From the sequence record NC_047815.1: a stretch of DNA of 64,000 nt. One strand, written 5' to 3'. A program made the translations under genes and the position numbers. Below the pieces are notes generated by a model. The model had not been told where the DNA came from, did not search any database, and saw only the letters and a list, made by a program, of their open reading frames with translations. Below, piece by piece: positions 6,936 through 63,838 of the stretch. How positions within the stretch are numbered: position 1 is the first letter of the stretch; each line of letters opens with the position of its first letter.

Positions 6936-6945
6936 AATCTGTAAA
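6936..6945 (+). promoter_or_regulatory. AATCTGTAAA box, putative phage-sigma promoter
   Basis: Intergenic, upstream of SSB gene; identical copies at 32755, 61477, 62144, 62201. Confidence 0.6.
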
Positions 6946-8309: not shown

Positions 8310-10820
8310 ATGGCTAAAGTAGCGAAAGAGAAAGAGAAAAAGACTAAGATTAAGAAGTCCAAGACAGCAACAGCAGTGGCAACTACACTTGACGATATGG
8401 AAACTGGTGTTGTCGGTTTCGATATTGGGGATTTGATGGATGATCAGCTTGACCTGATCGAAAAGAAAACTAAAGTAAGCTCAGGCACAGCAGAACGTAA
8501 CGCACCTCGTGTATCAACAGGCCAGCTTGCGCTTGACATGTTCCTGAGTGGTGGCATCGTATCTGGTGGCTGGTATACGTTTAGTGGCGGTGAGCAGTCA
8601 TGTAAATCGACTCTCACGATGGCAATCATGGCCAGCCTGATTAAACTTGAATACGGCGGTATCAGTGCTGTGTTTGACTATGAAGGTTCAACAGATGCTG
8701 ACTATGTTGCTGGTCAGTTGAAAACGTTTGGCGTTACTGTTGACCCACGTACCATCTTTGGTGTGCGTGATGATACGAGCGGTGATTGGTTGATCAAACC
8801 TCGTATTCGTTACTATGCGCCAGACAACGGCACTCGCTTCTTTGACTGGATGAGTTCGCTGCGTCGCCGTCTGCCTGACAAGATTGTTGAGAAAGACGGT
8901 ACAGCATACATGTTGTTTGAGAACAACAAAGAGAATGCTAAAAAGCTGGCAGGTAAGTACGACAAGAAGTGGTTCAGTCGTCACAATCAGTTTAAAGTGC
9001 GTGCACCTGATGGTCACATGCAAGCAATGGTAATCGTTGATAGTTATCCTGCGATGCTGCCTGATCAGCTTGATGATGATGAAGGTTCAAACGCGATGGC
9101 GATTCAAGCGCGTATGTTCTCTGATGGTATCAAGCGTTTCCGTGGCGGTATGCGTGGTAAGATGATCACCATCGTCGGCGTTAACCAGTTACGTCAGAAG
9201 CCTGCGACCATGTTTGGTTCGCCCGAATATGAGCCCTGTGGGGACGCTCTCAAGTTCTACTGCTTTGACGCTACCACACTGATTCGTACCAACTTCGGTG
9301 TATTGACAGCGCCTGCTATTCAGAGCATGATGGCAGACGGTACAGAAGTGCTGGTGGAAACGCTGGGTGGCTTCGAACCTATCATGAAAGCATGGCGAGT
9401 TGAAGAACAACGCACTCCACTTGAATTGACCACAGCAGGCACAAGCTATATCGGCAGTGATCAACACCGCCAGCTAGTGTTCTATCGTGACGTTACTGAT
9501 CACAACGAGCCCGCGCTGCGAACTGAGTTCGCCACACTGAGCGATATTCAGTCTGCGAGCGGTGAAGTGTATGCGGTGATGCGTCTGTCCACTGTAGACG
9601 AACTGATGGAGTACAGCCACAAAGAGCGTAACGCCAGCCTGCGTTATGTCAATCAGTTCCTGCGTAGCGATGCCGTCAACACAATGATCAATGTCAGTGA
9701 AGGCTATCAGGTAGTTGCCGCTGTGTTGCGTGTTGGTGAGAATCACGTTGCGACTGTTATCTCAAGCCTGCTTGACCTTGGCATTATCAGCTACGAAGCC
9801 GCTAATCATACCGTGATCATTCCTGGTCTGAGTGTAGGCACAATGCGTACAGCTATTCTTGATTCAGTCACAACTGTTGAGAACAGCCTGATTCAACGTA
9901 GCGTTATGTTGCACCTCGCAATCGCAGACGCATTCCCTGAGCTGGCAAACTTTGTTGGTAAGTACAATCTTGCTGCTAACCTGCATGAAGCCGCGCACTT
10001 CGGTTCACACTATCAATCAGATGATTATGCATATCTGGCGGACAGCGAATCGATGGAGAAAGCACTCAAGCGTTTGGTCGCTCGTGACTTCCCTGAGTTT
10101 GCTGATCAGTATGATGAGATCTCACGTCAGGCGGCATACATTGATGACCTGTTAAGTCTCGATGAAAACTTGTACCCTGTCGCTTGCTCAGTGCGTGCTG
10201 TATCAGAGCAACAGCCCGTTGAATTGTGGGATGTTACTGTACCCGCCACCAGCGCTGTTGTTACTAACGGCTTTGTCAGTCATAACTCAGACGTGCGCAT
10301 TCGTCTTGCTTCGCGTGCTGTACCTCAAGGCTGGCCGACGCTTAAAGATGAACGTGCTATTGTTGGAGAGAAGTCTGTTACCGTTGAAGGTGGTATTGAC
10401 CGCTATCGTTTCATCGCTGCTAAGACCATCAAGAACAAGATGGGCGGCATCCCGAATCAGCAGACGTGGTTACGTTTGTGGGAAGCAGATGGCAATGGCG
10501 AAGCGCGTGGCTTTGACCCTGTGTTTGATACGTGGCACTATCTGAAAACGCTTGGTCTAATCAACGGTATGCGCAAGAAGTTCAAGATCAAAGCGCCTTG
10601 TCCTATCGCCAGCGATAAAGCGATGGACTGGGATCAGTTCCGTACTCTGATCAACGGAAGCAAAGCACAGATTACAGAAGTCTGTAAAGAACTTGGTGTG
10701 AAGCCTGGCAGTCTTCGCGCTTGGTGCTTCAAATTCATCGCCAGTGAAAAAGGTCAGGCTATGCTGAAAGACAGCATCAGCCGCAGTACCAAACAGAACG
10801 ACGACGAAGACGAAGATTAA
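8310..10820 (+). CDS. uvsX: RecA/UvsX recombinase interrupted by an intein
   Basis: Walker A-like GGEQSCKST, DYEG, VIVDS, ARMFS, NQLRQK, PEY..GDALKFY|SDVRIRL. Confidence 0.9.
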   Translation: MAKVAKEKEKKTKIKKSKTATAVATTLDDMETGVVGFDIGDLMDDQLDLIEKKTKVSSGTAERNAPRVSTGQLALDMFLSGGIVSGGWYTFSGGEQSCKSTLTMAIMASLIKLEYGGISAVFDYEGSTDADYVAGQLKTFGVTVDPRTIFGVRDDTSGDWLIKPRIRYYAPDNGTRFFDWMSSLRRRLPDKIVEKDGTAYMLFENNKENAKKLAGKYDKKWFSRHNQFKVRAPDGHMQAMVIVDSYPAMLPDQLDDDEGSNAMAIQARMFSDGIKRFRGGMRGKMITIVGVNQLRQKPATMFGSPEYEPCGDALKFYCFDATTLIRTNFGVLTAPAIQSMMADGTEVLVETLGGFEPIMKAWRVEEQRTPLELTTAGTSYIGSDQHRQLVFYRDVTDHNEPALRTEFATLSDIQSASGEVYAVMRLSTVDELMEYSHKERNASLRYVNQFLRSDAVNTMINVSEGYQVVAAVLRVGENHVATVISSLLDLGIISYEAANHTVIIPGLSVGTMRTAILDSVTTVENSLIQRSVMLHLAIADAFPELANFVGKYNLAANLHEAAHFGSHYQSDDYAYLADSESMEKALKRLVARDFPEFADQYDEISRQAAYIDDLLSLDENLYPVACSVRAVSEQQPVELWDVTVPATSAVVTNGFVSHNSDVRIRLASRAVPQGWPTLKDERAIVGEKSVTVEGGIDRYRFIAAKTIKNKMGGIPNQQTWLRLWEADGNGEARGFDPVFDTWHYLKTLGLINGMRKKFKIKAPCPIASDKAMDWDQFRTLINGSKAQITEVCKELGVKPGSLRAWCFKFIASEKGQAMLKDSISRSTKQNDDEDED
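9261..10286 (+). mobile_element. intein (342 aa, residues 318-659), probably with degenerate endonuclease region
   Basis: Begins CFDATT after ALKFY, ends TNGFVSHN before Ser; block-F-like LWDVTVP. Confidence 0.9.
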
Positions 10821-18115: not shown

Positions 18116-18236
18116 CAAATCTGTGGTCAAAATAATCGCAGAAATCACTAGACAAATCTTTCTCAACCTGATAGACGCGGCAGTCGAAAATCTTTTTTGA
18201 AAAAGTGCTTGCAACATGTGTTCAGCATGATATTAT
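18116..18236 (+). promoter_or_regulatory. sigma70-type promoter with displaced upstream box
   Basis: TTGCAA 18209-14, 16-nt spacer, TGn-TATTAT 18231-36; CAAATCTGTGGTCAAAA at 18116-32. Confidence 0.7.
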
Positions 18237-29228: not shown

Positions 29229-29717
29229 ATGTCTAACAGAGCTATCAATCCTATGTTTAAACCCGCTGGCGTACCACTAAGTCCTCAAGAGTTTCGTGAT
29301 CACGTTGAAGAACAGCGTGAGCTACGCAGCAATTGGCTGGACAAGAAAGTTAACGAGGTTAACAAAATCCTTGTTGAGCTTGCGGGCAACAAACCTCAGA
29401 CCTGTCTTCTGAATCGAAATCCGATTGACCCAGATTACATTGCGTATGTTAAAGATCGTGTGCGCAACGAAGGTCACTTCGATGTTCCTGCTGACGCTAT
29501 TGCCATTTACCTCGATCTCGGCAGCACAGGCATTGTTGTTGACCCTGACCTGTTGCCTGAGTTCGCGCAGCGATTTATTGATGTTGGTTGGGGATCGAAG
29601 ACAACAGCGCATATCAGAGCATGTCACGACTATGATGTATGGTTGTTCCTTGATCCAGTTGAGGACGAAGATGACGACTTCGACGAAGAGGACGAGGAAG
29701 AGGAAGAACACGAATGA
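29229..29717 (+). CDS. hypothetical protein with acidic tail
   Basis: ORF in packed run. Confidence 0.7.
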   Translation: MSNRAINPMFKPAGVPLSPQEFRDHVEEQRELRSNWLDKKVNEVNKILVELAGNKPQTCLLNRNPIDPDYIAYVKDRVRNEGHFDVPADAIAIYLDLGSTGIVVDPDLLPEFAQRFIDVGWGSKTTAHIRACHDYDVWLFLDPVEDEDDDFDEEDEEEEEHE

Positions 29718-51253: not shown

Positions 51254-51967
51254 ATGCCTACATTACGCAAACCTCGTCCAGCAGATAAGTTCTCTCAAGC
51301 TCGCGCCGCCAAGAACTCTCCTGAACGTCAAGAAGCAGCCAAGAAGAAAGTGCCACGCGGTCCTAAATCAGCAGGCCCTCGTCGCAATACTGTCCAAGTG
51401 GAACGCGCTGCTACGATACGCGACGAGGACCGTGTTGTAAACCTCGTGCTGTTTATCTTACGTGGTTGGAAACAAGCTAAGGCGGATAGTGAAGCCAGCG
51501 CTGCACAGGGCATCATTAAGGTAAGTCGTCGTGAAATCGAACTAGCTTTACGCGATCTCAAAAACACGCGTTTCACTAAAATCCCGACACTGATTAACGA
51601 TGTGTTGGTCTACAACGAAATCGTAAATGAGTTTGGTCAGTGGGTGTACGTAGAGCATGATAGTCCTGACTGGATGTTCATCTTAACGCCAGATCGTGAA
51701 ACGCTTGTGACACGCTGTCGCATTCGCCGCAATAAAGAGACAGACGACCTGACACAGCTCATATCCTCAGAAGTTCTGTTGAAAGATTGGAGCGAAGAAG
51801 AGGTAGAGATAGACGTCTCAGAAGAAGGCGAGGAGTATCAATCATGGACCCTCAGCCAACTTCAAAACTTTGCTAAAGCCGAAGGTTACATGGGCATCAA
51901 AGATGAAGGATGGAACGATCGTTCAGCACTCATTGCTCGAATCATCAACAAGGGCGCAATCAAATGA
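51254..51967 (+). CDS. protein with basic N-terminus and C-terminal Rho-N/HeH-like helical module
   Basis: AAGGA SD; WTLSQLQNFAKAEG...RSALIARII. Confidence 0.75.
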   Translation: MPTLRKPRPADKFSQARAAKNSPERQEAAKKKVPRGPKSAGPRRNTVQVERAATIRDEDRVVNLVLFILRGWKQAKADSEASAAQGIIKVSRREIELALRDLKNTRFTKIPTLINDVLVYNEIVNEFGQWVYVEHDSPDWMFILTPDRETLVTRCRIRRNKETDDLTQLISSEVLLKDWSEEEVEIDVSEEGEEYQSWTLSQLQNFAKAEGYMGIKDEGWNDRSALIARIINKGAIK

Positions 51968-52293: not shown

Positions 52294-52321
52294 CTCTAAT
52301 TGAGCAAGGACGCATAATCTA

Positions 52322-52373
52322 CAAATAGATGGTCAAAATAGCGGTAGATTTCTACCGCTATTTTTGATACACT
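52322..52373 (+). promoter_or_regulatory. box-type sigma70 promoter overlapped by a 14-bp inverted repeat
   Basis: CAAATAGATGGTCAAAA 52322-38; TGn-TACACT 52368-73; inverted repeat 52335-64. Confidence 0.75.
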
Positions 52374-52380
52374 AGAGATC

Positions 52381-52533
52381 AAGCAGTACATCTTTTTAAA
52401 GTGTTCTAAGTGGGATTAGAGTGCTTTACAAAGAGCAAGACTTTTGACTGTGTGGCGGACTTCTAATGTCCGATGAATACGCGTTCAACGCCACACAGTC
52501 CTTTTTGCAGAGAGCACCATCTAGTGTACTGTG
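52381..52533 (+). ncRNA. candidate small structured RNA
   Basis: No ORF between two tandem promoters; 13-bp and 12-bp stems, U-tract at 52501, ends complementary. Confidence 0.55.
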
Positions 52534-52585
52534 CAAAACAGTGGTCAAAATGACCGTTGCTTTTAACCATGATTTTTCGTACTAT
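52534..52585 (+). promoter_or_regulatory. box-type sigma70 promoter
   Basis: CAAAACAGTGGTCAAAA 52534-50; TTGCTT 52557-62; TACTAT 52580-85. Confidence 0.8.
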
Positions 52586-52647
52586 TATATCTCTTGAGCA
52601 ATAACGCTCAACGCTATATCATCTACTAATACTGAGGAGTATTAATT

Positions 52648-54267
52648 ATGGCACGTCTCGAAACTTCTTCAAACCTGGTTGGCAAATCTATCGTTCTGCT
52701 GAACGGCACCAAAGCTAAAATTGTTGACGCTATCACAAGCGGCTACAAAACTGATAAGAGCGCGAAGCGTATCGCCACTCGCTGCGTTATCAAGAAGGGC
52801 ACTGGTTACGCAGAAATTGAACGTATGCCGCTGACCCAGCTTGTTGACACGGGTGAGGGTTATGTTGAAATCAAATCTGCTGACTCGAAAGCGCCTGCTA
52901 AAAAGACCGCTGCTAAGTCTACAGCAAAAGCATCAACCAAGACCACAACGAAAACTTCCGCCAAAAGCTCAACCAAAGCCGCAGCGAAAGCTGATAGCAA
53001 ACCAGCAGCAAAAGCAAAAGCGCCTGCTAAAACAAAAGCAGCCGCTAAGAAAGAAGAAGCCGAAGCGCCGCGTAGTCGTGTTCGTCGTAAGTCTGCACAG
53101 CCGACTACTTTGACCGCTATTGATCAAGAGTTCACCGAAGCTCTGGTGATGCGTGTTGTTGAGCATTTGAAATCAGGCAATCTGCTGTCACTTGCTACTG
53201 ACGGTGTTACGCCGATTGATAACGCGTTTGAAGTTACTTATGATGCGCAGTATGCAGCGCCGAATCAATTGCAGTTTACTATCGGTGTTGAGTATGCGAT
53301 GCCGCAGCAAGCCGCTGCAAACGATGCAGTAGAAATCAGCGCAGAAGTGCTGGAGCGTGCTGCTAAGAAAGTCGGCAAGACCATCGGCAAGAAACTTGCT
53401 GCTGCTATCAAGTCTGCGTACGGCGTAGACAGTGCGAAAGACCTGCTTGCTGGTACCGTACTGCGTCACGGCGATGATGAATTCATCTATATCGGTGCAA
53501 GTGCTGCCGACGCTGATAAAGCGTATATGTACAACGCCGAGTCTGATAAGTTTCGTGCAGTAGCCGCTGCTAATCTGTCTAGCTATGAGCTGGTGGCTGA
53601 CGAAGAACAAGACGAAGACGAAGAAGAGGAAGAAGAAGACGACAACGCTGACCTCGACTTTGAAGACGACGAAGAAGAAGAGGCTGATGACGAAGAAGCC
53701 GAAGAAGAGGAAGAGGACGAGGAAGAAGAAGCCGAAGAAGAAGAAGACGGCGAAGAATCTGAACCTGAATATTCTTATCGTTCAATCTCGAAAGATGAAT
53801 TGAGCCTCGTCAATAAGAAAGTAACTGCTAAGTATGTGGCGCAACTTGCTGAACAGTGGTCGCTTGATGTTGAAGCTCTGGTGCCTGGTCTGATTGTGTC
53901 AGACGGCGAAACCGAGTTCGCATATGTCGGCTTCGACTCTAAAGGCGGTCTGGTAGTTATCGATACACAAGACGGCGAAGCGATGGTCTACGCTAAAGCA
54001 CAGGTTAAATCGCTGACTGAGTTTGCCGCTGTGTTGGGCGACGACGAGACCTCTGACGAAGAAGCAGAAGAGGAAGAAGTTGAAGACGAAGAAGACGAAG
54101 AAGAAGACGGCGACGATGATTTTGACTTCGATGATGCCGACTCTGCTGACCTCGATGATATGTCAGAAGATGAATTGCGTGATAAAGTGATTCAAGCAGG
54201 TCTGACTACCGTACGCAAAGCTGGTCGCATGAACGAAGATGAATTACGCGAACTGCTGGCTGACTAA
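52648..54267 (+). CDS. modular protein: K/A-rich linker, two beta-rich domains, D/E tracts, C-terminal 40-aa helical module
   Basis: GAGGAG SD; composition and internal repeats visible in translation. Confidence 0.85.
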   Translation: MARLETSSNLVGKSIVLLNGTKAKIVDAITSGYKTDKSAKRIATRCVIKKGTGYAEIERMPLTQLVDTGEGYVEIKSADSKAPAKKTAAKSTAKASTKTTTKTSAKSSTKAAAKADSKPAAKAKAPAKTKAAAKKEEAEAPRSRVRRKSAQPTTLTAIDQEFTEALVMRVVEHLKSGNLLSLATDGVTPIDNAFEVTYDAQYAAPNQLQFTIGVEYAMPQQAAANDAVEISAEVLERAAKKVGKTIGKKLAAAIKSAYGVDSAKDLLAGTVLRHGDDEFIYIGASAADADKAYMYNAESDKFRAVAAANLSSYELVADEEQDEDEEEEEEDDNADLDFEDDEEEEADDEEAEEEEEDEEEEAEEEEDGEESEPEYSYRSISKDELSLVNKKVTAKYVAQLAEQWSLDVEALVPGLIVSDGETEFAYVGFDSKGGLVVIDTQDGEAMVYAKAQVKSLTEFAAVLGDDETSDEEAEEEEVEDEEDEEEDGDDDFDFDDADSADLDDMSEDELRDKVIQAGLTTVRKAGRMNEDELRELLAD

Positions 54268-54278
54268 CTGATACACAT

Positions 54279-54299
54279 GCGCCCTTCGGGGCGCTTTAC
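54279..54299 (+). terminator. stem-loop / probable terminator
   Basis: GCGCCC-TTCG-GGGCGC then TTT. Confidence 0.65.
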
Positions 54300-54335
54300 T
54301 TATTCATTCAAACAATCAAACGAGAGATTACGATT

Positions 54336-55415
54336 ATGGCCAAAGCTATATCCTCTGCAAACACCAACTTGTTAAACGCCCGTGTTGTTCGTGCTGACGG
54401 CACAAAGACATTCATCAACAAAGTCAATGCTCGTGGTTACAGCACTGATGCGAAAGGACCTCAGATTCCTATGCTGCGTCTTGTACAAAGCGGTCGCACG
54501 CTGAAAGAGATTCCAGAAGCGTATGACAAAGCTGCGTGCATCATTAGTGATGGCATCGTGTTCAAACTGAACCGCAAGCAACAACGCCAGCTTGCTGATA
54601 ACGAGATCGACAATAAAGAGTTTCGCGTAGACCTCGATCGCTTGCAGTTTGTTACTGACGCGCCCACTAAAGTGCAGCGCATGGCTGTACGACACACTCC
54701 TAAAGCAGAGTCTGTTAAAGCAGACAAGCGCCCGACTGCTAAACGCGTGCGCAAGCAAGCGAAAGCCGAAGGCATTGAAGTAGATATGTTGACCAAGAAA
54801 ACACAGACGGCGTCTCGCAAGAACAAGAAAGAAAAAGATGTGCCTGCTGATTTCATCAAGCAGATGCCACGCGAGATCAAACGATTGATTCAAGACGGTG
54901 AGTTCAAACTCAATCGCAAACAAATCGAAGCTGTGTTGAGTGCGTTAGGCGTTGACAGCGCATTCTATGCAGTCGCTGTTGAGCGTTATTTAGACGGTAT
55001 GTCACTGCGTTTACCCCAGCAAGACAAGTCGAAAGCAGGTAAGCGAAGCAAAGCTATCACACCTGTATATGCTGACCAGCGTGAATACAAAAAGCTGTTT
55101 CGAAAACTGAAAACAAAAGTTGTTGTGCCGACCAAGAAGTTTGAAGCACAGCACAAACTAAAAGTGCGCGAAGTAAGAAAGTTCTGGCAGGAAGCTCTTG
55201 GTCTGTCTAGCCCTGCTGATATTAAGAAAGGACTCATGGTCATTGATGACTATGGAGATAAGTTGATGCTGGTCACTATCGATCAAGTATCAACTATCTT
55301 TGTGAAAGCAGACGGTAGTGGTGAACGTCTGATGGCTCACGCCTTGCTTAATCACAAAAGCGGGCTTGGTAAATTCACATTGGCTCCTGCCGATGAACTG
55401 GATGCTAGCGCATGA
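54336..55415 (+). CDS. basic paralog of 52648
   Basis: N-terminal 43 aa align ungapped with 52648; K/R-rich. Confidence 0.8.
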   Translation: MAKAISSANTNLLNARVVRADGTKTFINKVNARGYSTDAKGPQIPMLRLVQSGRTLKEIPEAYDKAACIISDGIVFKLNRKQQRQLADNEIDNKEFRVDLDRLQFVTDAPTKVQRMAVRHTPKAESVKADKRPTAKRVRKQAKAEGIEVDMLTKKTQTASRKNKKEKDVPADFIKQMPREIKRLIQDGEFKLNRKQIEAVLSALGVDSAFYAVAVERYLDGMSLRLPQQDKSKAGKRSKAITPVYADQREYKKLFRKLKTKVVVPTKKFEAQHKLKVREVRKFWQEALGLSSPADIKKGLMVIDDYGDKLMLVTIDQVSTIFVKADGSGERLMAHALLNHKSGLGKFTLAPADELDASA

Positions 55416-55813
55416 ATGAAAAAACGAAGTTCGCAAAGAATGTTATCGCGGGCGCTGTTGCCCAAACCTATAGCCGTCTAACGTTGGCGGCAAGTCAAGG
55501 TCTGTTTCTCTACTATCAAGACCTATGCCCCATCATGTATGGGATGCATTTTGATCGTCTCAGTGAAGACCAGTCAGAAGCACTTTGGCAGTTACTTGCA
55601 GTCACCATGGAACTAGACGCGGCGGCGGGCAGATTGCCTCTTGCTGCCTTGTTTGTCAGTCGTCGTAAGGGCGAACATCAACCAAGAGCCGCGTTCTATG
55701 AAGTATATAAAAAGCTGTATGGCGAAACGCTTGATGCCGAAGGCTGGCGCAAACTAGTCGAGCGCATCTGGCAATCATACGCCATGCCTCCCGAACTGTT
55801 GGAGCGATTATGA
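55412..55813 (+). CDS. hypothetical protein, possible winged-helix domain
   Basis: YQDL...L...RLPLAALFVS pattern. Confidence 0.65.
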   Translation: MNEKTKFAKNVIAGAVAQTYSRLTLAASQGLFLYYQDLCPIMYGMHFDRLSEDQSEALWQLLAVTMELDAAAGRLPLAALFVSRRKGEHQPRAAFYEVYKKLYGETLDAEGWRKLVERIWQSYAMPPELLERL

Positions 55814-56277
55814 AACAACCGAAGAAGATTTCAATCAGTCGTTCGTCTATGCGCCCTGAACAACGTGACCACAAGCTGGCAAACGTTGTGAACTTTCTTT
55901 TGGGTACGATTGGTACTCAAGCTACTATGGTCAGTCAGACCATGTTGCTAAACACAGCTAACTATCACTGGCTTACCTCAGTATCAGACACTCGAAGCGA
56001 TACAAAAGAAAATCGCCGTGTGTTGCACAAAACTGTAAAAGATCTAAACGCGTATTGTAGAAAGAATAAAATACCGTTGGGATTACTAATTATGCCGCAT
56101 ACCTCAGCGTCTGATTCGTCTGGGGATGATGTGTGTGCCATACCGTGGACGCATGTTAAAGCAAGTGCAGCACAGCGCAGCGCAATCAATTCACTATTCG
56201 CACTAAGCATGAATGATTATGGCGAACAGTTTGTGCGAGACGCAAAAACTGATTCAGAGGGCAGCGATGTTTTATAA
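55810..56277 (+). CDS. hypothetical protein, possible distant paralog of 55412
   Basis: LNAYCRKNKIPLGLLIM. Confidence 0.65.
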   Translation: MKQPKKISISRSSMRPEQRDHKLANVVNFLLGTIGTQATMVSQTMLLNTANYHWLTSVSDTRSDTKENRRVLHKTVKDLNAYCRKNKIPLGLLIMPHTSASDSSGDDVCAIPWTHVKASAAQRSAINSLFALSMNDYGEQFVRDAKTDSEGSDVL

Positions 56278-57520
56278 ATCAATCTTCACAACGGAAGAGC
56301 AGAACCTTTTTCTGCAACTAATGCAGTGGCGCTTAATCCCGAATGAAGTTCCGAAGTTTATGGAAAGTTCGCAGTGTGTGATGAAAGTCCGACACAGCAT
56401 CATTCGTTACAATCAAGCGAGTCAGGTGGTGGCAAACATCCTGCCTCGTATAGCACCTCGTACTGTACTGCGTATTGTCAGTGAAGTGCGTGCAGGCAAT
56501 CTTGGTCTGCCGCTCACTCAACTTGCTGTGTTGTTTGAGCTTGGCATGGGCGTTCCTAAGCAGCGCGACATTGCACGCTATATTCGTGCGTATGACCCAC
56601 AAGAAGATCATGAAGGTCGTACACTGAAACATATACGCAAGATGATTGTGCAGTATCAGCGCAATCTCAAGCGCAGCCTGTACAACATTCAGTATCTGCC
56701 ACCAGCACCATACGTTGCTCAGATGTTGAAGCTCCAGCAGTTTGTTCATCTGCGAGAAGGCGGCTACAAGCACAAGGTCAAAGTACCAGACGGTCTGCCT
56801 GTCGTGCTGATCTATGCAAACGACAAAGTTGCCGAAGCACAGTTTACACTAACTGATGCCTTTATGATTAGCCCTCTTGGTTATCCCGTGCCGTTTGCTA
56901 ACATCGCAATGCGCAAGGAGTTTGGTGCTGTCAAGACTTTTCAGAGTCGTGCGCTGCAAGGCAAGGGAATGTACAGCATGGTGTTTGGTGTTGTCTATTG
57001 GTCTGGTCAAAAGACAACAGCGATGATGCGCCAACTGCGTTGTCTCGACACAGAAGAAAGCTATGCTGTGTTGTTCGACAACTATCCTGAATTGTGCAGT
57101 GAGGAATTGCTTGAGTCGTATCAATACAAGCGCACTGATACCGAACAGCACATCGCAGCACTGGAAACTGTAAAAGAATTTCGTGACCAACGTAGTCTGA
57201 CACCCAAGCAGCAACGTCGCCTTGATCGTGCAAATGAATACTTTGCCGTTCGCAGTGAAGCTCTTGGTGATCTTGAGAAATTGGAGAAACGTGAGGCGCG
57301 TAATCTCGAAAAGACAGGGCCTGTAGCCACAGCACGTTTTTGTGCAATTGACGCAGGTACCATCGAAGACCGAGATACCTTTACCAGTGTGAAGAACCCT
57401 ATTGAGAAAGTTGAAACTGTGTTAGCGCGTTGGGGATTTGAAACCCTAGGCAAAGCCGCTGATCGCAGTTCTGTCCTGACTTATACGAGCGCACCGAAGG
57501 GTCGCTGTTGGTCACTATAA
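56267..57520 (+). CDS. basic hypothetical protein
   Basis: GAGG SD before ATG 56267. Confidence 0.75.
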   Translation: MFYKSIFTTEEQNLFLQLMQWRLIPNEVPKFMESSQCVMKVRHSIIRYNQASQVVANILPRIAPRTVLRIVSEVRAGNLGLPLTQLAVLFELGMGVPKQRDIARYIRAYDPQEDHEGRTLKHIRKMIVQYQRNLKRSLYNIQYLPPAPYVAQMLKLQQFVHLREGGYKHKVKVPDGLPVVLIYANDKVAEAQFTLTDAFMISPLGYPVPFANIAMRKEFGAVKTFQSRALQGKGMYSMVFGVVYWSGQKTTAMMRQLRCLDTEESYAVLFDNYPELCSEELLESYQYKRTDTEQHIAALETVKEFRDQRSLTPKQQRRLDRANEYFAVRSEALGDLEKLEKREARNLEKTGPVATARFCAIDAGTIEDRDTFTSVKNPIEKVETVLARWGFETLGKAADRSSVLTYTSAPKGRCWSL

Positions 57521-57544
57521 CGTTATATCTGAGGAGATACAAAG

Positions 57545-60526
57545 ATGACCGATCAAAACACTAACGGTTCAGCGAAGTCTAGTGCTGAGGAACAACAGCG
57601 CGTGATTGACCAGAACCGTCACAACACAGCGGCAGCCAGTCAAGATAAGACTGCACTGTTTGTTGTGCTTGCCCCAACCAATGCTGACAACGAAGTTAGC
57701 AACGTTGATTGCAAAGGCGATTTCTTTGCGCGGCAGCTTGAAACAAAAGCAATTGACCGTCTGCCTGACATGTTGAGTCATGTTAGTCAGGGTCTGAAAG
57801 CACAGCACTCCGCATACGATTTACTGCTGCCTCAAAACGGCGTGCCTACTTCTATCGATGCGCGTGTGCAATTGAATGAGCAGTACGACGCCAAGATCGT
57901 TCGCTATACTGTAAACGTTTCAAAGTCGGCATTGATGCAACGTCTCAGCATGGCAATCTTCGATGTTGCTGGTGACCGTAACATCTATGACGTAGCAGCA
58001 CAGTACGGTATTCACGCTATTGTCCTCTCAGATGACAAACAAGCTGTAAATGTACTGCGTGAGTTAGAGTCTCAGCTTGTAGCGTCTAAAGCTGACTTTA
58101 ACTCGGTAATCGATATTGATGATGACGCGCTGAATACCGTGCTGATCAATGTCAACACATTGCCTGCTAATCCGAGCGTGCTTATCGAAGGCGTGCGTCG
58201 TACTTTCGCAATTCAAAATGCTAACGGCCAGTTGCTGGCACCGTCTAAAATTGGAGAACAAACTGTGGTAGATAAAAACAATGGTCCTGTAGATCTCGAC
58301 GAAGATAACTTTGAATCCGTTGATCAGGACAACGAGCAGTCCGACGAAGAAGAAGTGGCAACGGGCCGTGCGCTGCTGGGCTATCAAGCTGATAGCCTGA
58401 CTCAAGAGCAAAAGATTGAAGCTCTGACCGCTATCGATTATGATTGTTCCGAGATGGACGAAGAAGCAATCGACGAAGCGTTTTTGGTTGAGCAAGAGAA
58501 GTTCCTCGACAGCGAAGACGAAGACTCAGAAGAAGAATCTGATGAAGAATCAGAAGAAGCCGAAGACTTCGACGCTGCTGGTGAAATCACTGCTATCCTT
58601 GAGCAGTACGGTGATGACCGTGACCAGATCAAACGTCTGGTGCGTGCTGCTGAACTGAAAGTGCTGGTAGCCGATACTGCTGAAACGCTGGCTGCTAAAC
58701 TGATTGCTCATGTTGAAGACATGAACGAAGAACAGTTTGCCGAATTCCTGACTGATCTGATTGCTGCCGTTGAAGGCAAGCCTGTTGACGTTGCGCCGCT
58801 TAACGAGTGGTTCGATGATACCGACTCTACCGACGAAGAAGAAGACGAAGAGTCCGAAGATGAAGATGAGCAGGACGAAGATGAAGACGAAGATGAGCAG
58901 CAATCTGCCATCGACGCTATTACCGACCCGCTTGATTACTTCGACTATGCTGGTGGTGACCTGACTCCTGAACAACGTATCTCTGCGGTTGAAGCGATGG
59001 GTCACTCCACAGAAGGCCTGAACATCATCAAAGTGATGAAGCTGTTTAACCGTCTGAAAGAAGAAGTATCGCCAGAAACTCTGGACGAAGAAGACGAGCA
59101 GGACGCTCTGCAAGTTCAAGCAGACCTCGACGAAGAAGAGGAGATTGCAGACGAGTCAGAAGACGTAGTTAAGGCGCGTGCGTATCTCGCTGCTGCCGCT
59201 GCTGATGACCTGTCTATCATCGCCGAACTGGTTGGTGCAGATGCAACTGACCTCGACGAAGAACAGACTATCGAAGCCGTGTTGTTTGAAGGTGATATTG
59301 ATAATCTGATCGCTGCTGCTGATACGTACGGTGTTGAAGCTGACTCCGATATCTCCTACTGGGAATTGCTGGTGGCGTTCCTGGAAAGCTACTTCTCAGA
59401 AGATGATTCAGAAGAAGCGGACTTCGGACAAGATGAACCTCAGTCTGAAAACGAAAGCATCCTTGCTCAGGCTGGTGTTGAGAACAACTCTAATCCACTG
59501 GGTATCGAAGCTGTGTCTGGCGCCGACAACAGCGGTAGCTTGAAGTTCCTGCGTAATGCACACAACAGCCCAGCAGGTACGCTGATGAGCGTTGATATGC
59601 CGCAGTCGCTGATCATCAACTTCACGCTGACTGACCGTGCATCGTTTGAAGAATTCAACGAAGAACTGCAGGACGTTGACGGCCTGAACTATCGCTTCCC
59701 GTTTGTTCGTCCGAAGAAAGCGAACAAAGCACAAGGCGCGATGTACCAGCCTGCTGCGTCACTGATTGAAATCATGGAGCAGACTGCAACAAGCCGCTTC
59801 ATGGTCGACACTAATCAGTTTGATGTTGGTCAATTCAGCGAAGCACTGAATGCGTCACTGGCCACCAGCGTTGAGAACAACCTGTATGACGGTCTGCTGG
59901 AACCAGGCGCTAACCCGCACGAAGAAGGTCTCAAGCTCGGTGACTTTGTTGATGACGAAGAACTGACCGATGATGAAATCGCTCCTGAGTATTGGGACGA
60001 ATTCCAGGGTGCTGACTTGCCTATGCACGGTATCATCAACGGTTTCGTGGGCGTTCGTCCTGTGCAAATCGAAGAACTGCACAGCGTGTTGTGCCTCGGT
60101 GTGCTGAACGTTGCAGTGCCTGGTATCTGGGAACTGGACCGTAACAAAGTTGGTGAGCTGCTTGATGGCGCAATCAATGCTGTCAAATCTCTGCTGGCAC
60201 CGAACAACAACATCAAAGTACACGTGGGCTTCACTCTGAGTTCTGCCTCTCTGATTGTTGATGATACGCTGATGCATGTTGTTAATCATCTGCGTGATCA
60301 GGAAATGCTGTACAGCTACTCCTCTGCCGACTGTGCGTTGTTCGCAGACAACGAAGACGTGCTGGAAGCCGCTGCAAGTCTCGACAACAGCGAACGTCTG
60401 CCGCTTGAACTGCTGTCTACTGGCTTCGCTGGCAAGACGTTTGAAAACGGCGGTGACCTGACTATTCTGGTTCCTTGCTTTGAAATCGACGCTGACGAAG
60501 ACGAAGACGAAGCAGACGAAGAATAA
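57545..60526 (+). CDS. 993-aa highly acidic modular protein
   Basis: GAGGAG SD; short helical modules separated by D/E tracts. Confidence 0.85.
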   Translation: MTDQNTNGSAKSSAEEQQRVIDQNRHNTAAASQDKTALFVVLAPTNADNEVSNVDCKGDFFARQLETKAIDRLPDMLSHVSQGLKAQHSAYDLLLPQNGVPTSIDARVQLNEQYDAKIVRYTVNVSKSALMQRLSMAIFDVAGDRNIYDVAAQYGIHAIVLSDDKQAVNVLRELESQLVASKADFNSVIDIDDDALNTVLINVNTLPANPSVLIEGVRRTFAIQNANGQLLAPSKIGEQTVVDKNNGPVDLDEDNFESVDQDNEQSDEEEVATGRALLGYQADSLTQEQKIEALTAIDYDCSEMDEEAIDEAFLVEQEKFLDSEDEDSEEESDEESEEAEDFDAAGEITAILEQYGDDRDQIKRLVRAAELKVLVADTAETLAAKLIAHVEDMNEEQFAEFLTDLIAAVEGKPVDVAPLNEWFDDTDSTDEEEDEESEDEDEQDEDEDEDEQQSAIDAITDPLDYFDYAGGDLTPEQRISAVEAMGHSTEGLNIIKVMKLFNRLKEEVSPETLDEEDEQDALQVQADLDEEEEIADESEDVVKARAYLAAAAADDLSIIAELVGADATDLDEEQTIEAVLFEGDIDNLIAAADTYGVEADSDISYWELLVAFLESYFSEDDSEEADFGQDEPQSENESILAQAGVENNSNPLGIEAVSGADNSGSLKFLRNAHNSPAGTLMSVDMPQSLIINFTLTDRASFEEFNEELQDVDGLNYRFPFVRPKKANKAQGAMYQPAASLIEIMEQTATSRFMVDTNQFDVGQFSEALNASLATSVENNLYDGLLEPGANPHEEGLKLGDFVDDEELTDDEIAPEYWDEFQGADLPMHGIINGFVGVRPVQIEELHSVLCLGVLNVAVPGIWELDRNKVGELLDGAINAVKSLLAPNNNIKVHVGFTLSSASLIVDDTLMHVVNHLRDQEMLYSYSSADCALFADNEDVLEAAASLDNSERLPLELLSTGFAGKTFENGGDLTILVPCFEIDADEDEDEADEE

Positions 60527-60540
60527 AATCTGTTAATGTA

Positions 60541-60567
60541 GGGCGTAGCGCAACTGCGCCCTCATTT
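60541..60567 (+). terminator. stem-loop / probable terminator
   Basis: GGGCGTAG/CTGCGCCC stem, weak U-tract. Confidence 0.5.
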
Positions 60568-60579
60568 CTGGAGATTGTA

Positions 60580-61464
60580 ATGTCAGAACACAACAGCACT
60601 GAACAGCAAGACAGCGGTATGATGTTGCGTGACCACATCGTATCCCTTGAGCAGCGTGTTCGTAATCTGAGTGGTCAAGTGCAGGACTTATCTGCCGAGC
60701 TTGCTCAAACCTCTACGAACCACACCAACAAAAGCATTGAGTGCCGTCGCCTGACTCGTGTGTTAGCTGAACGTGATGCGCAACTGCAAGCAGCAACAGA
60801 CCTTGCCTCAGAACGTAAAACAGCACTTGAGCAAATGATTTCAGTCGGTGAAGCTCAACGGAAACTACGTGAGACGGAATCTCGCACTGCTGAAAAGCGT
60901 TACAATGAACTGCGTAACCAGCTTGCTAAGCCTGCTGGAAATCAGAAATTTGTTATGAACATGATAATTAACGCTGCACTGAACGAACTCCGTTGTGGTG
61001 TTGAGCGTGCGTTGTTCATGTACAGCACAGCAAATCCACGCAAGACCAATCGGCATCGTGCTGCCGAACAAGCACTGCGTGAGCAATTAACTTTGGAAGA
61101 CGTTCCAAGTTCTTTGCAGGATATTGTAAAAGTATACTGCGTTACAACAAACACGGCGTTTGATATTGATTCAGTCCTCAGCGAACTTAGCGCCCATGTG
61201 ATGTTGTGCCGAGAGACGATTGAAGACAGCGATACGGCGTCCGGCATGTTCAATCAAATGTCAAGCACGATAGTCGCACAGCGTGCCTTGCTTGAGCAAG
61301 ACGTAGCATCCGAACCTGACGACATTCTGTTTACGTTTATGTATGACGTAATCAACGATGACGAAAAGCCTTACGGCGATTCGCTGATTGATGCAGTAAC
61401 AAAATTGTGTGTACGTTACGCACAGCAATTAAGTTTCGAACTTCCAGTTTTATCTGACGAATAA
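60580..61464 (+). CDS. coiled-coil protein
   Basis: GGAG SD; heptad-rich N-terminal ~120 aa. Confidence 0.75.
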   Translation: MSEHNSTEQQDSGMMLRDHIVSLEQRVRNLSGQVQDLSAELAQTSTNHTNKSIECRRLTRVLAERDAQLQAATDLASERKTALEQMISVGEAQRKLRETESRTAEKRYNELRNQLAKPAGNQKFVMNMIINAALNELRCGVERALFMYSTANPRKTNRHRAAEQALREQLTLEDVPSSLQDIVKVYCVTTNTAFDIDSVLSELSAHVMLCRETIEDSDTASGMFNQMSSTIVAQRALLEQDVASEPDDILFTFMYDVINDDEKPYGDSLIDAVTKLCVRYAQQLSFELPVLSDE

Positions 61465-61476
61465 AAAATCAGAATA

Positions 61477-61486
61477 AATCTGTAAA
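61477..61486 (+). promoter_or_regulatory. AATCTGTAAA box
   Basis: Intergenic perfect copy. Confidence 0.6.
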
Positions 61487-61544
61487 TTGTAATTGAACCA
61501 CACACGGTAATTGTACCGCGACTATTAATCATCTGGAGTTTTAA

Positions 61545-62114
61545 ATGGCAAAGTCCACTAGCACTGCACTGGTAGCACCGACTCGTATCAACCGCATTTC
61601 TAAAAAGAGCGGTTCTATTTCACAGTCTGCTGCTAAAGCGTCTCAGATGCCGCACGATGTAACTATCACCGCTACTCAGGTTTACGATGTTCAGGGTTTC
61701 ATCACTGAACTGACTGCTGACAGCGTAACTATTCGTCACAAACGTGGCTTCGGTTCAAGCGCCCAGGTTCTGTCAACGTTCCCACGCAGTCAAGTTATCG
61801 AGCTGGTGGGTGATACCGGTACTTTCGGTAGCCTGAGTGTTCTGGGCAACGTGCCTGTTCGTACTCTGAAAGGTCAGTTGCTGTCGTTTAAGGGTACTCA
61901 AGTCATTGCTACTGACTTCGATACCAAAGAAGTTACCGTGCTGAACACAACCGTGCCTGGCGTGTCTATCACTTACGCTGTGAACGAAACTGCCGCTGCT
62001 AAAAAGTATGGCATTGCTGCTCCGACCAAAGGCAAGAAAGCTGACGCGAAAGCAGCGCCTGCTAAAGCTGCTAAAGGCGGTAAGCCAGTCAAGGCTGGTA
62101 AATCAAAAAAGTAA
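61545..62114 (+). CDS. basic protein with beta-rich core and K/A tail
   Basis: GGAG SD; ends TCA AAA AAG TAA. Confidence 0.8.
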   Translation: MAKSTSTALVAPTRINRISKKSGSISQSAAKASQMPHDVTITATQVYDVQGFITELTADSVTIRHKRGFGSSAQVLSTFPRSQVIELVGDTGTFGSLSVLGNVPVRTLKGQLLSFKGTQVIATDFDTKEVTVLNTTVPGVSITYAVNETAAAKKYGIAAPTKGKKADAKAAPAKAAKGGKPVKAGKSKK

Positions 62115-62141
62115 GTTCTGACGAAGATTTTTAATCGTCAG
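62105..62141 (+). other. candidate -1 programmed frameshift signal
   Basis: A AAA AAG heptamer, 6-nt spacer, CTGACGA/TCGTCAG hairpin. Confidence 0.5.
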
Positions 62142-62143
62142 TA

Positions 62144-62210
62144 AATCTGTAAAGTGTATTCGTCAAGGGCGTTGTTGTTTTAACAGCGTCCTCAAAAACA
62201 AATCTGTAAA
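62144..62210 (+). promoter_or_regulatory. two AATCTGTAAA boxes
   Basis: Perfect copies at 62144 and 62201, upstream of 62256. Confidence 0.6.
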
Positions 62211-62255
62211 CTTTATTCGAATCAAGTCGATTCTACTCAATAGGAAAAAGTTATC

Positions 62256-63047
62256 ATGGCAAAAGCTAAAGCAAATACCGCAACTATCGTTCTGGCAAAA
62301 ATCCTGGGTGTGTTCGTTGAGAACGCAAGCGACAAAGAAATCGCTGCTGCCCTGGCCGAAGCCGGTCTGACTGTTTCTGGTGGCAAAGTCGTTAAAGCTG
62401 ACAAAGCTGCCAAAGGCGGTAAAGGCAAAAAAGCTAAAGTGGCAACTGTTGAACAAATCGTTGCGGCTGTGAAAGAAGAAGAAGCAATCGACCTGACTGG
62501 CGTAAGCGAAGATGATCTGCGTGCTGCCGTTGTTAAGGCCAAGCTGTCTGCTGCTAAGAAAGCCAAAGCGCTGGACGAAGAAGCTCTGCTGGAGCTGCTG
62601 AACGAAGCGATGGGCGTCGAGTCTGACGAAGAAGAAGACGAAGACGACGAAGAAGACGAAGACGAAGAAGACGAGGACGAAGAAGAAGAAGAAGAAGACG
62701 ACTCGGACGATGAAGACGAAGACGAAGACGAAGACGAAGACGAAGACGAAGACGAAGACGACGAAGATGAAGATGAAGATGAGGACGAAGATGAAGATGA
62801 AGATGAGGACGAAGATGAACTCGACCTCGCTAATCTCGACGAAGACGAACTTCGCGCTCTGGTAATCGAACATAAACTGGCGCCTAAGAAAAAGGCTGCT
62901 AAGATGGACGAAGACGAACTTCGTGAACTGTGTGAAGCTCACTTCGGCGATGACGAAGATGAGGACGAAGAAGACGAAGACGAAGACGAGGACGAAGATG
63001 AAGACGAAGACTTCGACGATGAAGACGAAGACGAAGACGACGAATAA
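62256..63047 (+). CDS. extremely acidic protein with two 40-aa helical modules
   Basis: AGGA SD; ~65-residue near-pure D/E tract plus D/E tail. Confidence 0.85.
   Translation: MAKAKANTATIVLAKILGVFVENASDKEIAAALAEAGLTVSGGKVVKADKAAKGGKGKKAKVATVEQIVAAVKEEEAIDLTGVSEDDLRAAVVKAKLSAAKKAKALDEEALLELLNEAMGVESDEEEDEDDEEDEDEEDEDEEEEEEDDSDDEDEDEDEDEDEDEDEDDEDEDEDEDEDEDEDEDEDELDLANLDEDELRALVIEHKLAPKKKAAKMDEDELRELCEAHFGDDEDEDEEDEDEDEDEDEDEDFDDEDEDEDDE
62712..62759 (+). repeat. (GAAGAC)8 perfect tandem repeat encoding (ED)n
   Basis: Eight exact hexamers. Confidence 0.9.
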
Positions 63048-63241
63048 TAGCATCTAACGTGCTGCACTTCTGTAACTCTTAATCTGAGTCGCACAGAAAA
63101 AAGTTTGAAATTTCCTCGATAAAACTTGTAGACGTATGTTGAGAATGATAATGTACGTCTACAGGAAATCGAAACCCTGAACACTTTTGTTTTTAACTCG
63201 CGCACCACATACAGCGCAAATCAAAAATTCTGGAGAAGAAT

Positions 63242-63763
63242 ATGTCTAAGAAAGTTATCGCCGGTCTGAACAAAAACCTGAAAGCAATCGCTAAATCAGA
63301 AGCTGCCCTGACCAAAACTGTTAACGCCACCAGCAAAGAAATCGAAAACCTGGGCGCACAGCGTGCCGGTATCGAAGCGCAGATCGCTGAACTGTCTGGT
63401 GTTGCTGCTCCGGCTAAAGCGCCGAAAGCGCCGAAAGCTGCGAAAGCTGAGAAGCCTGCAAAAGCTGGTAAGAAAGAAAAAGCTGCTAAAGCTGAAAAGC
63501 CAGCTAAAGTGAAAAAAGAAAAAGCTGCTAAAGCTGAGAAACCTGCCAAGGCCGGTAAAGCTGCTAAAGCAGAAAAAGCTGCTAAGCCTGCTAAAGCAGA
63601 AAAAGCTGGCAAGAAAGTGAAAGCCGAAACCAAACCAGCTAAAGCTGACAAAGCTGCTAAAGGCAAAAAAGCTGACAAAGCTGCTAAGCCTGCTAAAGCC
63701 GGTAAAGCTGGTAAGAAAGCGAAAGCATCTGCTGACGAAGATTTCGATTTCGAAGTAGCATAA
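63242..63763 (+). CDS. histone H1/AlgP-like K/A/P-rich DNA-binding protein
   Basis: N-terminal coiled coil, KAAK/AEKPAK repeats, acidic-aromatic tip DEDFDFEVA. Confidence 0.75.
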   Translation: MSKKVIAGLNKNLKAIAKSEAALTKTVNATSKEIENLGAQRAGIEAQIAELSGVAAPAKAPKAPKAAKAEKPAKAGKKEKAAKAEKPAKVKKEKAAKAEKPAKAGKAAKAEKAAKPAKAEKAGKKVKAETKPAKADKAAKGKKADKAAKPAKAGKAGKKAKASADEDFDFEVA

Positions 63764-63801
63764 AAACTGCGGCGGGTGTTACGGCACCTGCGTAAAACAG
63801 A

Positions 63802-63838
63802 AGGGGTTGACACTGAATAAAAGGTGTTAACCCTTTTT
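63802..63838 (+). terminator. intrinsic terminator
   Basis: GGGTTGACAC/GTGTTAACCC stem then TTTTT. Confidence 0.8.

Follow-up and report, generated by a model that had tools for sequence, protein, structure and literature searches.

This study analyzed a 64,000-nucleotide stretch of the genome of Erwinia phage vB_EamM_Yoloswag (hereafter Yoloswag; NC_047815.1, 259,700 bp), a jumbo phage infecting the fire-blight bacterium, and focused on a cassette of ten consecutive plus-strand genes, gp314 to gp323. The stretch, hereafter called the window, is 100% identical to record positions 186001–250000, and coordinates given below are window positions unless the record is named. The record holds 333 features, and each of the ten genes is deposited as a hypothetical protein. 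An earlier reading made from the letters of the window (the sequence-only reading) had described the region as a series of alternating hyperacidic and hyperbasic disordered proteins and had proposed a phage chromatin or condensate system. Each open reading frame (ORF) named in that reading was found at its expected start and matched the deposited genes gp314–gp323.

Three of the genes encode strongly acidic products. The gp314 gene (52648–54267) specifies 539 amino acids with a net charge of −70, laid out as an N-terminal domain, a basic linker rich in lysine, alanine, and threonine (K/A/T), a helix-plus-β-sheet module present twice, two runs of aspartate and glutamate (poly-D/E), the motif DDDFDF, and a C-terminal three-helix module. 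In gp319 (57545–60526; 993 amino acids, net −174), conserved N- and C-terminal regions surround acidic runs and an internal helical repeat, and the hyperacidic gp322 (62256–63047; 263 amino acids, 47.9% D/E, net −100) has three helical modules, with poly-D/E after each of them, and carries an invariant tail, DEDFDDEDEDEDDE. The poly-D/E tracts measure 50–100 residues. Interleaved with these genes are those of three basic proteins. The first, gp315 (54336–55415; 359 amino acids, net +28), has a gp314-like N-domain, a disordered middle rich in lysine and arginine (K/R), a C-terminal β module, and the conserved tip SELDA[STA]V. The second, gp321 (61545–62114; 189 amino acids, net +16), joins an all-β core to a lysine-rich disordered tail. 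In the third, gp323 (63242–63763; 173 amino acids, 27.7% K/R, 30% alanine, net +28), a helical, coiled-coil-like N-region of approximately 55 amino acids is followed by a repeat tail of lysine, alanine, proline, and glutamate (K/A/P/E) and an acidic-aromatic tip.

The remaining four genes carry milder charges. The small, near-neutral gp316 (55412–55813; 133 amino acids, net 0) is coupled to gp315 by an overlapping stop and is kept in 15 of 15 related loci, and the small gp317 (55810–56277; 155 amino acids, net +5) is conserved at 51–63% identity across the group. The product of gp318 (56267–57520; 417–435 amino acids, net +14, isoelectric point 9.4) is basic and mostly globular; it is the best-conserved globular member and belongs to an orphan family, and its profile search retrieved only proteins of the same phage group, without names or domains. 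The mildly acidic gp320 (60580–61464; 294 amino acids, net −14) evolves rapidly, and a similar-sized gene occupies the same position in relatives. Two minus-strand ORFs, at 62163–63053 (296 amino acids, poly-F/V) and 63193–63813 (206 amino acids, A/L/F-rich), were rejected as genes; they are mirror artifacts of the codon repeats in gp322 and gp323 (GAx and AAA/GCT). Naive longest-ORF calling prefers the antisense 62163–63053 ORF over the real gp322. The gp323 ortholog in phage pEa_SNUABM_5 (gene 00339, L003:15152–15658) is deposited as a "putative valyl-tRNA synthase," a label that is almost certainly a misannotation of K/A-rich low-complexity sequence.

We ranked all six-frame ORFs of the 259.7-kb genome (796 ORFs) by charge. 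The results revealed that gp319 ranked first, gp322 third, and gp314 sixth in acidity, and that gp315 and gp323 were among the most basic real genes. After correction for one spurious antisense ORF, five of the 14 extreme-charge genes of the genome fell in these ten consecutive genes (permutation p = 0.003). Conservation is a stronger argument than this clustering for an origin other than chance. In 15 related phage loci taken from viral contigs, at 37–50% identity, the gene order is identical, and the net charges range from −56 to −83 for gp314, +26 to +34 for gp315, −174 to −206 for gp319, +11 to +16 for gp321, −84 to −106 for gp322, and +26 to +32 for gp323. Across the same loci, the identity of gp314, gp315, gp318, and gp319 is just 33–58%. 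In the DNA, imperfect codon repeats encode the charged tracts (GACGAA is repeated 33 times in gp322, for example), and tract length differs between orthologs while total charge is maintained.

The proteins are also linked by common modules, as the sequence-only reading had claimed; we compared these by using hhalign on ortholog subalignments. The N-domains of gp314 and gp315 matched at 93.5% (E = 2e-7), repeats 1 and 2 of gp314 at 94.7%, the C-terminal helical module of gp314 and modules 2 and 3 of gp322 at 97.2–97.5%, and the latter two modules with each other at 98.5%. An internal helical repeat of gp319 (residues 272–322 and 458–520) matched at 92.8%, and the match between gp314 repeat 2 and the gp315 C-terminus was weak (49%). 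Furthermore, an acidic-aromatic motif lies at or near the C-termini of gp314 (DDDFDF), gp322 (DEDFDDEDEDEDDE), and gp323 (DEDFDFEVA). The pattern [DE]3-F-[DE]-[FDE] occurs five times in the 796 six-frame ORFs, and three of the five occurrences are in the cassette. The gp323 tip, [ED]DFDF[DE]ME, is invariant in 15 orthologs, gp319 carries a conserved internal DEDFDAEDE, and several gp321 orthologs terminate in DEDF. Since these short motifs are well conserved on otherwise drifting tails, they may share one docking partner. Elsewhere in the window, gp271 (29229–29717; 162 amino acids) ends in EDEDDDFDEEDEEEEEH, which contains the same acidic-aromatic motif, and it may use the same docking partner. 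Taken together, charge, gene order, and modules support the view that the cassette is a coherent, selected multigene unit of charge-complementary, module-sharing proteins.

The alternating charge pattern described earlier thus holds for gp314, gp319, and gp322 versus gp315, gp321, and gp323, whereas the disorder is only partial: the cassette proteins combine folded domains with charged linkers. Low complexity reaches 46% in gp322 and 57% in gp323; the remaining members are mosaics, and gp318 appears globular. AlphaFold2 modeled a confident all-β core in gp321 (residues about 36–155; mean predicted local distance difference test [pLDDT] score 87.3), which contains an invariant R-H-K-[RK]-G loop. 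In gp314, confident islands were predicted at residues 150–320, 375–465, and 500–539, and 45% of the residues, forming the basic linker and two acidic runs between islands, scored below pLDDT 50. The module shared by gp314 and gp322 follows the pattern ..L.EDELR..V...GL....KA..M.EDELR.LL and was modeled as short helices joined by a linker (pLDDT 85–91). The coiled-coil protein of the sequence-only reading, gp320, probably has an N-terminal coiled coil, on the basis of subthreshold matches to coiled-coil families.

Searches of Pfam (E ≤ 0.1), NCBIfam, PADLOC, and PHROGs with all ten proteins identified no functional family, and profiles of gp318, gp319, gp321, and the pooled helical module matched no sequence in the PDB. 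Foldseek comparison of the models with the PDB gave nothing significant for gp321 (best E = 0.02, template modeling [TM] score ≤ 0.29) or gp314 (E ≥ 0.2); recurrent weak hits of gp314 were Tudor/Agenet/PWWP/SH3-like barrels, the best being the Tudor domain of UvrD at a local TM of 0.53, and nonsignificant hits to small barrels of this kind recurred for the gp321 core as well. Low-complexity matches to topoisomerase III, a sigma factor, PspA, and JetC were rejected as compositional. The shared helical module resembles SAP, LEM, and HeH domains in length and pattern, and SAP (E = 0.12) and Ish1 (E = 0.05) matched segments of gp312, LEM (E = 0.25) a segment of gp314, and SAP (E = 0.04; 14.0 bits versus a cutoff of 23.9) the protein gp131 of Pseudomonas phage PaBG, all below the Pfam cutoffs. 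The pooled module profile (A8) retrieved no SAP, LEM, or Rho-N structure from the PDB (best E = 1.5, the C-terminal hairpin of UvrB), and a SAP/HeH reading is unproven. The gp312 gene itself (51254–51967, plus strand) encodes a basic disordered N-arm, a folded middle, an acidic patch, and a C-terminal helix-linker-helix; its hhalign match to the gp314 module was only 39.6%, and its membership in the cassette is uncertain.

The resemblance to a histone with its acidic chaperone, which had been suggested earlier, stands as far as the cassette is a charge-complementary, module-sharing unit, but not at the level of homology. In the ten proteins, Pfam detected neither the winged-helix GH1 domain of linker histones H1/H5 nor a nucleoplasmin/NAP/SET core, and Pfam and NCBIfam detected no HU/IHF (Bac_DNA_binding) or histone-fold domain; the gp314 model likewise found no nucleoplasmin-type fold in the PDB. 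The description of gp323 as H1/AlgP-like is correct in composition: it has a disordered Lys/Ala/Pro-rich tail of H1 type, which is insufficient for membership in H1/H5, and its N-region is helical or coiled-coil-like by sequence. For homology to AlgP/PhaF (such as a phasin domain), Pfam gave no match and a word-indexed search returned three weak low-complexity matches.

The layout recurs in outline in the distant phage PaBG. There, gp131 is acidic with the architecture of gp314, gp128 is basic, gp127 is an acidic counterpart of the C-terminal region of gp319, gp126 is a gp321 homolog (33% identity), gp125 contains 66.7% D/E, and gp124 contains 34.7% K/R; gp124 ends in DDDFEDFDDLD and gp125 in EEDFD. 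A trio consisting of a gp321-like protein, a hyperacidic protein, and a coiled coil with an alanine/lysine/proline (AKP) tail recurs in two metagenomic contigs, L025 and L029. In a third, the distant 205-kb contig L028, a single polypeptide combines a basic arm of ARKA repeats, the gp321 core, and a poly-acidic tail ending in EEDWEE, and is followed by a gp323-like gene and then by GyrB, Toprim, and TopoIV-A genes. This fusion suggests that the basic and acidic functions are linked and act together. A few kilobases upstream of the gp321-like gene, L028 also encodes a 151-amino-acid protein with 42% D/E and a long poly-E run at its end (L028:4287–4742) and a 143-amino-acid protein with 34% D/E (L028:5939–6370), suggesting that hyperacidic partners recur where sequence similarity is lost. 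The gp321 family forms 65 clusters at 50% identity among 1.84 billion representatives, and in BFVD the gp321 model matched only uncharacterized proteins (from phage Alexandra, PaBG, and two other entries, with Achromobacter phage Motura marginal).

The regulatory signals associate part of the cassette with replication. The box AATCTGTAAA, whose clustering had been noted in the sequence-only reading, matches 16 times in the window at ≤1 mismatch, against 5.2 expected, and no shuffle gave 16. Exact copies lie before gp321 (one; 61477–61486) and gp322 (two; 62144 and 62201, around a hairpin at 62167–62191, the whole spanning 62144–62210), and a variant, (AA)TCTGTTAA, lies between gp319 and gp320 together with a GC-rich hairpin (60529–60561; hairpin 60541–60561). 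Genome-wide, the box extends to (A/T)TCTGTAAATA, always on the strand of local transcription; in the window this form is found at 6936, 32755, 40995, 61477, 62144, and 62201. The box, also written TCTGTAAA(TA), precedes the genes for DNA polymerase (gp161), the clamp loader (gp202), single-stranded DNA-binding protein (SSB; gp238), Dam (gp25), ParB (gp42), and dUTPase (gp295), as well as a tRNA methyltransferase gene, a recombination endonuclease gene, gp321, and gp322 (twice). None of 19 upstream regions of structural genes contained it. Doubled boxes are kept before the gp321 and gp322 orthologs of phages Y3 and pEa_SNUABM_5 (Y3_322 included). The box probably serves one temporal class of genes as its recognition element, perhaps for the phage sigma factor gp237.

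A different set of signals precedes gp314. Its 354-bp upstream region (52294–52647) contains a terminator-like hairpin after gp313 (52340–52359, plus a T-run), two GGTCAAAAT elements (52331 and 52543), and a σ70-like promoter match (52594–52622). Upstream copies of the element AAAACAGTGGTCAAAATGAC are likewise found at gp308 and at gp326, the gene for topoisomerase II. A recurring element, GTGGTCAAAAT, was found at window positions 18125, 27753, 49455, 52331, and 52543 and at record position 250975, with an extended −10-like TGnTAnAnT approximately 25–30 nucleotides downstream; before gp308, gp314, and gp326, it may mark an activator-dependent promoter class. Ranked among 298 genes, the Shine–Dalgarno (SD) sequences of gp314 (top 6%) and gp319 (top 3%) are strong, whereas those of the other cassette genes are average, so that the earlier statement of strong SDs applies to these two only. 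An intrinsic-terminator-like hairpin (GCGCCC-TTCG-GGGCGC with a T-rich run; 54279–54294) lies directly 3' of gp314. Between gp322 and gp323, the spacer is unusually long (194 bp) and holds an inverted repeat (63127–63163) with 10-bp perfect arms (TGTAGACGTA and TACGTCTACA) and a predicted stem of approximately 17 bp with flanking pairs, which might act in termination, in processing, or as an operator. The boxes, upstream region, hairpins, and inverted repeat of the cassette are on the plus strand.

Genomic context agrees with the boxes. The cassette lies on a plus-strand block of replication and metabolism genes, and the structural module is on the minus strand, 37–150 kb away. Gyrase/topoisomerase II genes adjoin the cassette in Erwinia and Dickeya phages; in Yoloswag and Y3, two small genes intervene. 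In PaBG, the counterpart cassette is followed by genes for a sigma factor, SSB, UvsX, and a topoisomerase. Yoloswag, a member of the PaBG/Lu11/Y3 group (PMC7412058), has a sigma factor gene. No nucleus-shell or tubulin gene had been seen in the window, and this extends to the whole record by its annotation, in which chimallin, PhuZ tubulin, and multisubunit viral RNA polymerases are lacking, no chimallin profile having been run. Elsewhere in the window, the "putative RecA" gp239 (8310–10820) is 836 amino acids long versus 501 for the UvsX-like protein of PaBG; with inteins annotated at gp96 and gp98, an intein or an extra domain is possible in gp239.

For PaBG, 14 virion proteins visible by Coomassie staining have been listed (gp202, 215, 240, 213, 76, 257, 94, 191, 83, 261, 80, 81, 214, and 263; PMC7412058, Table 1), and gp124–131 are not among these major bands. 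The gene numbers in that article agree with the RefSeq tags (sigma factor, 118; exonuclease, 137). The supplements of the PaBG literature contain no mention of gp124–131. The band evidence against a virion location is weak and agrees with that of location and promoters. Together, the replication-type box, the genomic location, and the absence from the PaBG bands favor an intracellular, nucleic-acid-linked role for the cassette over a role in the virion.

We tentatively propose, with somewhat less than even confidence, that gp314–gp323, perhaps together with gp312, are one conserved cassette of intracellular nonvirion polyelectrolyte proteins that are expressed with the replication and topology genes and organize nucleic acid through an acidic-basic network. 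The lysine-rich gp323, gp321, and gp315 would bind phage nucleic acid nonspecifically and coat or condense it, gp323 contributing an oligomerizing helix and a K/A/P tail and gp321 a β-barrel core and a lysine tail. The poly-acidic gp322, gp314, and gp319 would serve as DNA-like counter-polyanions that pair with the basic proteins and hold, deliver, or strip them, and might also handle host DNA-binding proteins. Common N-domains, helical modules, and acidic-aromatic tips could join these proteins into one multivalent network, acting as a chromatin-like coat or as a coacervate; compaction, shielding, and phase separation would be its possible effects. A chromatin or condensate function is a plausible candidate role.

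Several points weigh against this proposal. Sequence, profile, and fold searches found no match to DNA-binding, histone, HU, or chaperone families. The summed charge of the cassette is about −358 versus +91, so simple mutual neutralization is not evident: the cassette is strongly negative overall and is not a simple stoichiometric acid-base pair. RNA and polyphosphate are ligands of AKP-type tails as well (PMC12818456, PMC9239181). The promoter classes (early or middle) and the timing are deduced from motifs only. The PaBG list covers Coomassie-visible major bands only, and very acidic proteins stain poorly. Finally, the most basic protein of the phage, gp181 (+63), is encoded outside the cassette, on the structural strand next to genes for head-tail connectors; as a packaged DNA-condensing protein, it is a stronger candidate than any member of the cassette. 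This gene (record 153404–154090) encodes 228 amino acids with 30% K/R and 3% D/E.

A bolder form of the proposal is that a phage lineage lacking a phage nucleus encodes a self-contained "chromatin" kit, in which lysine-rich DNA coaters and poly-acidic chaperones are joined by docking modules and tips into a condensate in which replication takes place, which shields the genome, and which is taken apart before packaging. We regard this form as doubtful.

The alternative that survives best, which we nonetheless consider unlikely, is that the cassette provides decoys for host takeover or antidefense: poly-acidic DNA mimics would soak up HU, H-NS, Fis, and restriction or other nucleases, and the basic proteins would bind the host chromosome and either compact it or shut it down. 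Ocr is an example of an acidic DNA mimic, and the poly-D/E tracts have a DNA-like charge density. The strong acidity of the whole cassette would leave polyanion in excess of the need of the phage basic partners, and the σ70-like promoter match and very strong SD of gp314 are consistent with early, high expression. A phage inhibitor of HU, Gp46, provides a precedent (PMC8892312). Nevertheless, neither Pfam nor PHROGs matched an antidefense or DNA-mimic family, and PADLOC, whose models describe defense rather than antidefense, gave only the subthreshold coiled coil of gp320. The known DNA mimics are small and folded, not kilodalton-scale mosaics. The conserved pairing of basic and acidic genes, the common modules, and the L028 fusion point to partners inside the cassette, and the box common to replication genes suggests that gp321 and gp322 are expressed in the middle class and not as immediate-early genes.

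It is improbable that the proteins are internal cargo of the virion, packaged with the DNA in the head or ejected into the cell, and serving as counter-ions or early effectors. Highly charged proteins that appear abundant, with the strong SDs of gp314 and gp319, would suit such cargo, and the internal proteins of T4 are a precedent. The PaBG authors also mention additional virion-associated proteins of unknown function that are not listed in their text. In contrast, the position of the cassette far from the structural module, the 0/19 count for the gp321/gp322 box at structural genes, and the PaBG band list all argue for another role. Moreover, the head module has extreme-charge genes of its own: gp181, by the connectors, and gp140 (−143), by the major head protein and protease genes. 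The latter (record 101141–103183; 680 amino acids, annotated as "ATPase") is the second most acidic protein of the genome; with the major head protein region on one side of it and the head maturation protease on the other, its position suggests that it may be an internal head protein or a scaffold, and not an ATPase.

Quite improbable, in our view, is a system acting on RNA or polyphosphate, in which the K/A/P tails bind RNA or ribosomes to control translation, as in PhaF, or polyphosphate granules, as in AlgP, under regulation by the acidic partners. The AKP tail of PhaF binds RNA and activates translation (PMC12818456), and AlgP organizes polyphosphate granules (PMC9239181). The three weak gp323 matches include a ribosomal protein L4 that carries a K/A extension; the valyl-tRNA synthase label of the gp323 ortholog, which could be counted on the same side, is owed to the same composition. 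The neighbors of the cassette in three divergent lineages are genes of DNA replication, recombination, and topology, not of translation, and Pfam and NCBIfam detected no RNA-binding domain in the ten proteins. That the proteins are components or assembly factors of the tail "hairs" of this phage group is very improbable. The hair proteins have yet to be named (PMC6143709), and long, repetitive, extended proteins could make fibers, but PaBG-like and metagenomic lineages have the cassette as well, its place is outside the structural module, its regulatory context is not that of structural genes, it is not represented among the PaBG major bands, and the authors of that article favor tail-fiber genes.

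The preferred reading, an intracellular acidic-basic network on nucleic acid, has several precedents by function, all of them unrelated to the cassette by sequence or fold. Phage T4 has genome-associated polypeptides, some very basic and others very acidic (IPI–III and the acidic internal peptides). The cassette resembles them as a set of both kinds; however, the T4 proteins are late, protease-processed virion parts encoded in the head module, whereas the cassette lies in a replication block with replication-type boxes. SSB-type tips (..DDDIPF in Escherichia coli SSB, a terminal Phe in T7 gp2.5) dock partner proteins, and gp323, gp322, gp314, and the gp321 orthologs likewise carry an acidic-aromatic tip that is better conserved than the tail; the cassette has no OB-fold or SSB homology, and a different gene of the phage, gp238, is annotated as its SSB. 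Basic partners are known to be bound by acidic stretches that terminate in an aromatic anchor. H1 with prothymosin-α, nucleoplasmin, or SET, and likewise HMGB1, follow the same logic of charge, in which a poly-D/E partner or tail regulates a disordered, lysine-rich DNA binder, and the L028 fusion resembles HMGB1-type self-regulation. Because Pfam detected no histone fold, H1 winged helix, HMG box, or nucleoplasmin core, this likeness is one of analogy, not ancestry.

The nearest precedent for phage chromatin is p6 of phi29, an abundant nonvirion protein that coats the viral genome during replication and affects replication and transcription (PMC10899789, PMC4974454); the function of the cassette, by comparison, is only proposed. 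The p6 protein is single and small with a fold of its own, bears no sequence or fold relation to the cassette, and has no multigene cassette, K/A/P tails, or dedicated poly-acidic partners. K/A/P-rich tails, as in H1, AlgP, and PhaF, bind polyanions (PMC9239181, PMC3574117). The layout of gp323 is that of PhaF, with an N-terminal helical oligomerizing region and a long Lys/Ala/Pro tail (AlgP, also called AlgR3, is compared likewise; PMC3574117, PMC9239181, PMC12818456). The likeness is compositional, and gp323 differs in the many glutamates of its repeats, the invariant acidic-aromatic tip, and the hyperacidic neighbor.

By kind, the cassette would belong with the polyelectrolyte nucleic-acid organizers of viruses and bacteria; in its multigene form, built from orphan families, such a system has not been described for phages. 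In the literature on Yoloswag, Alexandra, the SNUABM phages, and fHe-Yen9-02, we found no paper treating the cassette genes, and a 2026 jumbo phage review leaves histones, acidic proteins, and condensates unmentioned. Should the proteins organize phage DNA, they would be the first kit of several components to form viral chromatin or a condensate in bacteria; should they act as decoys for nucleoid or defense proteins of the host, they would make up a new class of DNA mimics that are large and disordered. In both cases, the locus contributes a number of orphan families, together with confident new models of two domains, the gp321 core and the gp314 repeat module. The chromatin kit, if real, would be a convergent counterpart in a prokaryotic virus of histone H1, prothymosin, and nucleoplasmin, and a second, membrane- and shell-free route to a jumbo-phage compartment. 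The finding thereby bears on how jumbo phages without a protein nucleus organize and protect a replicating genome of 260 kb.

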